NCBI GenBank assembly: GCA_013115145.1
Contig: JAAPAO010000092.1
Location: forward strand, 17,114-81,113
DNA length: 64,000 nt
DNA from: Perkinsus chesapeaki ATCC PRA-425
Taxonomy: Eukaryota > Protista > Perkinsozoa
Direction: 5' to 3'
The first letter of the stretch is position 1. Each line of letters starts with the position of its first letter. The translations under genes and the position numbers were made by a program. Below are positions 51,739 to 54,700 of this stretch, one piece after another. The notes beneath the pieces were generated by a model, which worked only from the letters and a program-made list of their open reading frames with translations, was not told the DNA's origin and did no database searches.

Positions 51739-54700
51739 ATGGCTGACGGTTGGCCCGCAAGCGCTGTGTTCCACTCCAGAGCCCCTGGATACGCCTTCGA
51801 TGACATCATCCTTCTCCCCGGCCACATCAACTTTGGCGTCGAGACCGTCGATCTGTCAACTCGGATTTCTAAGGACATTATTGTAGGAATGTTAATTTCG
51901 TGGCGAGTGACTATTATGGCTGTATCTGATCAGCTGCGAACTCCTATTATTAGCAGTCCTATGGATACTGTTACCGAAGCCAAGATGGCCATCGCCATGG
52001 CACTTCTCGGGTATGATGGAATCCTCAGTGTATAATAGTTACTGTTATCATTTAGTGGTATGGGGGTGATACATGGCAATATGACCACGGACGCGCAAGT
52101 CCAGGAGATCCTCAAGGTAGGTTAAAGCTTGCTTAAACCGGAGACAGATGAGAACATTGCCACTGTTTACAATAATTCTAGCTTCGTGCTTGTTGTCGCT
52201 ACGTTTGTTTCCTCCTCTAACTCTTCCTCTGCTCTCCTCGTGTGTCAGTCTTCAACTTTGTTGGTTATCATTCATTGACGGCACTGGCGTCCTCTTTGGT
52301 CATATTGCCGTTCGCTTCCAAGTGGTGCGATGGTTCAGGTCAAACGTTATGAGAACGGTTTCATTATGGACCCCTACGTCCTCGGCCCCAACAATACAGT
52401 TGCAGATGTGGATGAGATCCGAAGGGTGATAATTTCGTGGCGCGGTGACTATTATTATTATTATAATGTTCAGGTTGAAGGTTTCTCGTCTGTCCCTATC
52501 ACACAGAACGGTCGCATGGGCGGCAAACTCCTCGGAATTGTGACAAGTCGAGACATTGATTTCATTGACGATCGTTCGACCTTGTTGAAGGATGTAATGA
52601 CGCAGGCTAAGGATCTGGTAAGGGGGAGGAGAGAGTGCCATAGCGGCCATGTGGAGGGTATCTCCTGAGGGTATAGTTACATAGCATTACTGAAATATTA
52701 AGTATCAGTGTTGTCGTTTGTATTATATAATACTACCTACGCAGTACCGAGCGAAAATGGAATAACTTTTATTACGAGCAAATTTAGCTCAGCTAAAGGC
52801 TTGCGGAATTGCGCGGCATCATCATCATCATCATCTGATTGTTCGGTTAGGGTTGTCCTCCGCGTAGTTTGTGTTAATTAGGATCGTATGAACAAACAGT
52901 TCATCCCAGCCCTATGGGACTATGAGAAGTTCATCATCAGTATTCTTCATTCTCTAATGTATCTGTTATTATGTTTGACATGTTTAATTGACTGCATTGG
53001 TTTACTAAGGCGTTATAGCATTGCTCTTTTGATAGGTAGTCGGCAGCGAACCTATATCCCTGAATGAGGCCAATGCGAAGCTTCAAGATGCAAAGGTTGG
53101 CAAGCTGCCGATTATCAATGACGACTGGGAGCTCGTGGCGCTGATTTCTCGAGAGGACCTCAAGAAGAACAAGTAATTATGTGGCGCGCGGTAATTAGTT
53201 ATTTTGTTATTAGGGACTATCCTAACGCTTCTAAGGACAGGAATAAGCAGCTCATCGTTGGTGCTGCCGTGCCGGTAGGAATTTCATTCGTCCATTTTTG
53301 ATGATTGGAAATCAGATTCTGCCCGCAATGGAGCTGTCGGCTCTCGAGGATAGGTGCCGCCTGCTGGTGGAGGCCGGGGTCGATTTGCTGGTCTTGGACT
53401 CCCCCGATGGTGATTCAAGTATGCAGGTTGAATTGATTAAACGTATTAAGGCCAAGTAGGCTGATGCACGGTGATGTAGTTTTTATACCATATTTCCGTC
53501 AACTCAGGCATGATAATGTTAATATTATGGCTGGTAATGTAGTATCAGTAAGGCAGGCCAAGAGCCTTATCGATGCCGGTAGGTGCTCCCATTCCTTCTG
53601 TCCTCAATGGCTCTTAAGGTGCCGATTCCCTCCGTGTCGGTATGGGCTCTTCCTCGGTCGGCATCGGTGCCAGCATCACAGCAGTTGGCCGTGCGCAGGC
53701 CAGCGCTGTTTACAAGGTTGGAAAGTTCGCTCGAGATTATGCAAATGTGAGCAGGCGGAGATCAAAAAGGGTTGCGGGGCTTCAACAAGCCCCTGGGCTA
53801 TTGGTTTGGGATCTCGGTCGTAGGGAAAGGATTCGGCCACAAAATAAAGAATTGATCTTTGGACTTTGAGACAAACACTGTATTATCATTCCTGTATATC
53901 CCTTCTTATAGTGCAGCGCTTCTTTGACCAGGCAGCAGGCGAGTGGCAGTGGATGAGTATGGCTGCCGACTGAGCTGCCGTGAGCGGCTCAGCTATGGGT
54001 CACTCAGTAAATGTATCACGTATTCTCTATATTATCTGAGTTGTAGATCTGAGAACTGTGCCAGGTTTGTGCTCGATAGAAGCTTCTTATTATTAAACCG
54101 CATTTATCATAGTAGTGTGGTATGGGTTATATTTCCCTCCTTCCTCCTTAGGTCCCAGTGGTAGCCGATGGTGGTATCCAGAACTCTGGTCATATAATGA
54201 AGGCACTTTGCTGTGGAGCTAGCGCAGCTATGATGGGGAGCGGACTTGCTGGAACTGATGAAGCACCAGGTGATCATTTGGCGGAGGAGCGGTATGGCCA
54301 GTGCTGTGGTCGGCAAGTTGCCAACGGTTACGGAGAAGCCCGGAAATATCTTGACCGAACTGAGATAGAGATTGTAACTTTGGTTTCTGGAAAATGTTGA
54401 ATTTTTGTGGAAAATCCTGGAAAAGTTATCTTTGGTCAACCCACATAGGCGGTTCGGCAAGGATGTTGTTGTTTAGGTGACTATTATTATTCGGATGGTG
54501 TTCGAGTGAAAACCTACAGAGGAATGCATTCTTTTAATGCCGTCAGAGAATGCTTCACAAATGCAGGAAAGGATACTAGCCGACTGGACAGGCCGTTTGC
54601 CGCTCAAGGTAGCGACTCAGGTTCGATTCCCAGGGCGGGCATGTAGTTATTTTAGGCGTTCAAGCTGCCGTTGTGGATAAGGGTTCGGTGAACTCTCTCG

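Follow-up and report, generated by a model that had tools for sequence, protein, structure and literature searches.

The rate of guanine-nucleotide synthesis is set by inosine monophosphate dehydrogenase (IMPDH). The enzyme is a target for drugs against parasites and has become a model for studying control by allostery and by filament formation. Catalytically dead paralogues that assemble with an active enzyme and regulate it are represented by PRPSAP1/2 and by the trypanosomatid prozymes of S-adenosylmethionine decarboxylase (AdoMetDC) and deoxyhypusine synthase. Within the IMPDH family, Mycobacterium tuberculosis carries two IMPDH-like genes without IMPDH activity, guaB1 and guaB3, and guaB2 is the functional gene (PMC3315515). 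Here we describe an IMPDH paralogue lacking the catalytic cysteine, encoded on the + strand (51739–55281) of a 64,000-nucleotide stretch of Perkinsus chesapeaki ATCC PRA-425 (contig JAAPAO010000092.1, positions 17,114 to 81,113). This whole stretch is referred to as the window, and all positions are given in its coordinates.

GuaB1 was later assigned GMP reductase (GMPR) activity, and GuaB3 has no Bateman domain. The Perkinsus protein resembles these two in being an IMPDH-family paralogue that appears not to be a functional IMPDH and that exists beside an active one. It differs in having retained its Bateman domain but not the Cys that the IMPDH and GMPR reactions both require; GuaB1 and GuaB3 are also bacterial and of independent origin. 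Like PRPSAP1/2 and the prozymes, it is a dead copy of an enzyme of nucleotide or polyamine metabolism, maintained by selection beside an active copy, and it keeps the oligomeric scaffold. Those proteins belong to different enzyme families, however, and co-assembly in Perkinsus is a proposal by analogy. Compared to canonical IMPDH (human IMPDH2, structures 1b3o and 6u8e, and P. olseni KAF4652960), the protein is alike in length, in its barrel with a Bateman insert, in its phosphate and ribose binders, and in its C-terminal EGG motif, but it differs at Cys331, Thr333, Gln334, Gly415, Arg429/Tyr430, the DSSQG motif, and Phe/Tyr282 (residue numbers are those of human IMPDH2). In the searchable literature we found no description of a dead IMPDH paralogue, whether in Perkinsus, in dinoflagellates or in any other group, and the nearest published concept is that of the non-functional, IMPDH-like GuaB1 and GuaB3.

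An earlier note on this DNA, written from the letters alone, had read the nucleophilic Cys as Gly and the neighbouring Thr as Gly, with further changes in the YRGMGS and DSSQG motifs. All of these substitutions were recovered. In a search against the PDB, the peptide of the loop exon aligned to human IMPDH2 (E 6.6e-9) with Gly in place of both Cys331 (codon GGC, 53660–53662) and Thr333 (53666–53668). In the same loop, Gln334 is replaced by Ala, Glu335 by Ser, and Gly328 by Ser. YRGMGS has become YRGMHS through a Gly415 to His change (54530–54532), the DSSQG motif of the nicotinamide adenine dinucleotide (NAD) site reads DSPDG, and Phe/Tyr282 is Val. A change absent from the earlier note affects the flap, where the Arg429/Tyr430 dyad is replaced by Lys (54572–54574) and Asp (54575–54577). 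For the full-length alignment and the structure model, the P. marinus orthologue P0194 was used as a proxy.

Cys331, Thr333, Gln334, Arg429, and Tyr430 are invariant in 84/84 canonical IMPDHs, and all five are absent from the window protein. It lacks three features of an active IMPDH (EC 1.1.1.205), namely the catalytic Cys, Thr333 with Gln334, and the Arg429-Tyr430 dyad. The Cys-Thr pair that a GMPR (EC 1.7.1.7) carries in the equivalent loop is likewise Gly and Gly, and the CBS-containing GMPR structures 6jig and 6lk4 scored much below IMPDH2 when P0194 was searched against the PDB. Since both the nucleophile and the dyad that activates water are missing, we infer that the protein can neither form the covalent E-XMP* intermediate nor hydrolyse it, and that it would support no covalent IMPDH or GMPR chemistry.

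Outside these sites the protein retains the features of its family. The IMP phosphate and ribose binders Ser329, Asp364, Gly366, Gly387, Ser388, and Tyr411 are present in the window protein and in P0194, as are, in the window protein, Gly365, Arg322, Asn303, Asp274, and the C-terminal Glu500-Gly501. P0194 aligned to human IMPDH2 with an E value of 1e-157 (residues 3–498 against human 16–506), and overall identity to active IMPDHs is 52–55%. An exon-wise search matched Pfam IMPDH (PF00478) and CBS in individual exons; the match extends over the whole barrel, and the CBS pair (PF00571) forms a Bateman insert at the canonical position, as in the IMPDH/GMPR structural family. A model of P0194 in the Atlas (predicted local distance difference test, 0.84) had template modelling scores of 0.92–0.93 to IMPDH clusters over residues 1–507, and an Atlas search with P0194 returned generic IMPDH clusters only. 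Judging from this model of the P. marinus orthologue, the IMPDH fold is retained. The CBS pair, the phosphate-binding motifs and the reading frame are intact, as the earlier note had supposed.

The gene model comprises 14 exons and 13 introns, all of the latter GT..AG and 40–418 nt in size, with a coding length of 1554 nt (517 codons plus a TAA stop at 55279–55281) and an unbroken frame. It was derived from spliced RNA-derived contigs, tblastn of P. marinus P0194, and splice-site and frame checks. RNA contigs show the joints 51882/51934 and 52009/52055 within exons 1–3 and 53455/53508 between exons 8 and 9. One RNA contig (X7 record 23) spans exons 4–6 exactly, and another (X6 record 20) shows the splice from exon 12 to exon 13, with depth reappearing at 55152–55285 in the region of exon 14. 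RNA-derived contigs without introns match the window exactly.

The altered loop is also supported by independent sequence. DNA contigs from two separate studies (X1 and X2) match the stretch with 0 differences, and the same holds for X6 record 19, a contig of spliced RNA that extends over 53618–53690. All DNA and RNA evidence (X1, X2; X6, X7) consists of assembled contigs. These show Gly and no Cys, and therefore exclude a read-level Cys and RNA editing as far as contigs can show, in agreement with the earlier argument that a sequencing error does not explain the changes. No alternative exon carrying the canonical loop was detected, either by tblastn with the canonical protein P0232, which gave a single match, or by a six-frame motif scan of the whole 64 kb. 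Nor was a second IMPDH copy found within the window.

Orthologues of the window gene are present in P. marinus (XP_002782378) and P. olseni (KAF4685504, "IMPDH 2"). They are colinear with the window protein and 93–95% identical to it; across exons 4–6, which encode the Bateman domain, amino-acid identity is 92–100%. The 26-residue loop and YRGMHS are identical in the P. marinus (P0194) and P. olseni (P0308) orthologues, so the Gly that the earlier note wished to see checked in related species is conserved. Codon comparison exon by exon, with per-exon counts summed over 508 codons, gave ratios of non-synonymous to synonymous substitution rates (dN/dS) of 0.022 against P. marinus (L002) and 0.026 against P. 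olseni (L003). The proportions of synonymous differences were 0.72 and 0.68, and those of non-synonymous differences 0.051 and 0.046, respectively. The loop exon alone holds approximately 25 synonymous versus approximately 2.5–4.5 non-synonymous differences between the window and the P. marinus and P. olseni loci. Synonymous sites are saturated while the protein is nearly unchanged, which is the mark of very strong purifying selection.

The earlier note had also suggested looking for a second, Cys-containing IMPDH, and canonical copies were found in all three species. GSGSICTTQE and YRGMGS occur together in P. olseni "IMPDH 1" (KAF4652960), in three P. marinus entries, and in P. chesapeaki KAF4672478, the last of which is a fused gene model. 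The window gene is thus homologous to an enzyme family whose essential residues it has lost, is intact, spliced, transcribed and under purifying selection (dN/dS ~0.02), and has an active paralogue in the same organism. These data strongly support the proposed pseudoenzyme: the gene is maintained by selection and is not a pseudogene, and its product is predicted to be catalytically dead. In public databases, the Cys-less proteins of P. marinus and P. olseni are plainly named "IMP dehydrogenase".

It should also be noted that X6 and X7 contain a second RNA form of the gene. It has 22 listed differences from the window (51712–51882, 51939–52010, 53541, and 54475–54606), all of which are synonymous third positions. 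Its contig depth is equal to or above that of the window form, and it is carried by no X1 or X2 DNA contig. This form is known only outside the loop, as its contig stops after the first 14 nt of exon 10. An allele, a haplotype, a paralogue, or another strain could account for it.

Word-based searches seeded with relatives, each list comprising the best 120 matches, gave dozens of full-length Cys-less proteins. Three Amoebophrya strains, in which Cys has become Ala, are represented among them, along with an MMETSP transcript, the EukProt entry GEMP01017552 (possibly from Hematodinium), and many metagenomic and metatranscriptomic sequences. Trees were unrooted and were built by quick search with the loop columns removed, with support given by the Shimodaira-Hasegawa-like approximate likelihood ratio test (SH-aLRT) alone. 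The Cys-less proteins form one clade, of 30 proteins in the first tree and 45 in the second, with a support of 99 in both. It takes in many uncultured marine eukaryotes and is sister (85–89) to canonical Perkinsus-type IMPDH, and in the first tree both groups lie within a myzozoan clade, supported at 100, that includes the apicomplexan enzymes. As far as these alignments go, the trees show the Cys-less clade to be ancient and of single origin. It follows from this topology that catalytic loss would be older than the split between Perkinsea and Syndiniales.

To see which sites were lost, we took those alignment columns, 141 in all, in which the 84 canonical IMPDHs are ≥95% conserved, and followed them in the clade. 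Of these, 96 are kept in ≥90% of the clade members, 29 are kept in part, and 16 are lost. The lost columns are Thr252, Gly328, Ile330, Cys331, Thr333, Gln334, Met414, Gly415, Ala419, Met420, Arg429, Tyr430, Phe431, Ala440, Gln441, and Gly445; all lie in the Cys loop or the flap/finger except Thr252, a single NAD-site residue. Cys occupies position 331 in 84/84 canonical IMPDHs versus 0/30 clade members, and the Arg429-Tyr430 dyad has been lost throughout the clade by deletion or replacement. Of the Bateman columns conserved in canonical IMPDH, 0/30 are lost in the clade. Ser329, Asp364, Gly365/366, Gly387, Ser388, Arg322, Asn303, Asp274, and Glu500-Gly501 are conserved, with the six phosphate and ribose binders named above present in 20–30 of the 30 members. 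We also looked for a shared new catalytic residue among the newly conserved positions of the clade and found none: they are Gly, Ala, Met, Leu, and Val, plus one Asp at 505. The small or hydrophobic nature of these positions argues against a shared new catalytic residue.

Further Cys-less groups lie outside the Perkinsus clade. These are Phaeothamnion confervicola P0091 with P0092, P0099, P0120, and P0138; the pair P0343/P0352; and the singletons P0149 and P0185. Their residue in place of the catalytic Cys is Ser or Ala, and YRGMGS and the flap have degenerated. In this the Phaeothamnion group and P0343/P0352 are like the Perkinsus clade, but they form separate branches, and most keep Thr333 and some Gln334. 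Since they branch elsewhere in the tree, these groups represent independent losses, and the starred branches of the tree require at least four state changes. Dead IMPDH copies therefore seem, on this sampling of sequences, to have arisen repeatedly in protists.

Two environmental loci illustrate other gene structures. A search of a representative library with the 43-residue loop exon gave as its lead the Cys-to-Ser relative P0031; this library is clustered at 50% identity and cannot return close orthologues. P0031 is encoded at 2857–6714 of a 9 kb environmental eukaryotic contig (L001, ENA ERZ25069810) by a gene that has far fewer introns than its Perkinsus counterpart, with a single exon coding for the last 237 residues. 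An intronless Cys-less IMPDH gene is located at 10001–11503 of a very gene-dense 189 kb scaffold from an uncultured eukaryote (L004, ENA ERZ19570058 scaffold_35), with MCM6, coatomer, Rpb4, and Mo25 as neighbours. In both trees, the group to which the L004 protein belongs is the one most closely related to the Perkinsus protein.

We consider it probable (roughly 0.6) that the window gene encodes a dead, nucleotide-binding regulator, or "pseudo-IMPDH". Its barrel would still bind a nucleoside monophosphate, and its Bateman domain would bind adenine and guanine nucleotides. The likeliest role would be that of a non-catalytic regulatory or scaffolding partner that senses these nucleotides through the Bateman domain. 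The nucleotide-sensor and regulatory-subunit roles put forward earlier would agree with the retention of the Bateman domain and, as predicted from the residues present, of the phosphate/ribose pocket; the data are neutral on the filament scaffold also suggested there. Pseudo-IMPDH may co-assemble with canonical IMPDH into mixed tetramers or octamers, like the PRPS-associated proteins or the trypanosomatid prozymes. The mixed-oligomer version would take roughly half of the probability given to a dead regulator.

Several points weigh against this interpretation. The hetero-oligomer idea comes from analogy with other enzyme families. Quick-search trees with SH-aLRT support may reflect long-branch attraction among fast-evolving dead copies. 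The loop varies among subclades: position 331 is Gly, Ala, Ser, or Pro, and position 333 is Thr, Ser, Arg, or Gly. The pocket may therefore bind different ligands. Finally, a canonical Amoebophrya IMPDH was not among the best 120 matches listed, whereas the Cys-less Amoebophrya copy was. If the canonical copy is truly absent from Amoebophrya, the protein there works without a catalytic partner, which would favour an autonomous role.

Such a role, independent of canonical IMPDH, could consist of nucleic-acid binding or control of transcription or translation via the Bateman domain, and moonlighting of this kind has been reported for IMPDH. The full retention of the Bateman domain and the Amoebophrya matches are consistent with it, but the scaffold of the catalytic domain has been conserved as well, together with the phosphate/ribose binders, and neither would be needed for a purely Bateman-driven function, so we regard an autonomous role as unlikely. 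Neofunctionalization is about equally unlikely. Here the barrel would bind a nucleoside monophosphate and carry out other, non-covalent chemistry, or act on another substrate, using residues besides Cys331 and Arg429/Tyr430. The very strong purifying selection, the retained phosphate/ribose pocket with Asp274, Asn303, and Arg322, and the Arg at 415 and Asp or Glu at 335 of many clade members would all suit a new enzyme. However, no new polar residue is conserved clade-wide apart from Asp505, Perkinsus has His407 and Ser326 where other members have that Arg and Asp, and many members have a shortened flap or none at all.

That the protein is still an IMP dehydrogenase, using another nucleophile or a different loop conformation, appears highly improbable. 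Its overall identity to active IMPDHs and its match to human IMPDH2 are substantial, but the five residues invariant in canonical enzymes are all absent and the Perkinsus nucleophile position is Gly, neither Cys nor Ser. Least probable of all, and with no evidence found in their favour, are the readings that the gene is a pseudogene in decay, that sequencing or assembly went wrong, or that RNA editing or alternative splicing restores the Cys. A pseudogene was rejected on the basis of the intact frame, the low dN/dS, and a loop identical in three species; sequencing error and editing were rejected because the DNA of two studies and the RNA contigs agree with the window; and a Cys-restoring exon was rejected because the 64 kb contain no canonical-loop exon.

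Exons of the Cys-less IMPDH gene in the P. chesapeaki window
Feature	Positions	Strand	Content	Evidence
Exons 1–3	51739–51882, 51934–52010, 52056–52116	+	N-terminal catalytic barrel including SSPMDTVTE	Pfam IMPDH, E 2e-14
Exons 4–6	52339–52425, 52474–52617, 53036–53172	+	Bateman (CBS pair) domain	CBS match
Exons 7–9	53214–53274, 53316–53455, 53508–53578	+	Barrel strands; altered NAD-site motif DSPDG (53397–53411), conserved AGNVV	
Exon 10	53619–53746	+	Active-site loop exon	Ungapped alignment to human IMPDH2 317–357
Exon 11	54152–54269	+	VPVVADGG (Asp364, Gly365, Gly366) and MMGS (Gly387, Ser388); ribose/phosphate binders kept	Pfam IMPDH, E 1.5e-16
Exon 12	54477–54608	+	YRGMHS (54518–54535) and degenerate flap with Lys-Asp (54572–54577)	
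Exons 13–14	54656–54787, 55160–55281	+	C-terminal barrel; KEGGVHDL kept (Glu500, Gly501, Gly502)	

All 13 intron positions are common to the window, P. marinus (L002), and P. olseni (L003). Five introns of the window gene are 207–418 nt long (52117–52338, 52618–53035, 53747–54151, 54270–54476, and 54788–55159); their counterparts are approximately 45–55 nt in P. marinus and mostly 50–110 nt in P. olseni. The 47-nt intron 12 (54609–54655) interrupts the conserved AQG motif, and the RNA joint from 54606 to 54654 corresponds to GT..AG at 54609–54655. Many DNA contigs share short pieces within introns 1 and 5 (loose ends near 51893–51911 and 52832–52833), which suggests dispersed repeats. Downstream of the IMPDH gene, one or more genes at 55610–63557 are colinear with residues 511–1536 of KAF4698526, a P. 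olseni gene model in which they are joined to the IMPDH paralogue. The name "Minor histocompatibility antigen H13" is attached to several members of the cluster. The fusion and these names probably reflect chimeric models or misnamed genes in the annotation of P. olseni.

At a minimum, metabolic reconstructions should not count the window gene as a second IMPDH. If pseudo-IMPDH regulates the active enzyme or serves as its scaffold, purine metabolism in the alveolates that parasitize shellfish and dinoflagellates would have a further level of control, and work on pseudoenzymes would gain a clean example of great age. The functional annotation of dozens of sequences would then be corrected as well. 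More tentatively, and with somewhat less than even odds, the dinozoan alveolates (Perkinsea, Syndiniales, and many uncultured marine relatives) may have kept an ancient dead IMPDH, older than the split between them, as a dedicated purine-nucleotide sensor or prozyme-like regulator of guanine-nucleotide synthesis, with similar copies arising at least four times in protists. If this is true, control of IMPDH by a non-catalytic twin would be a recurrent and so far unrecognised solution.

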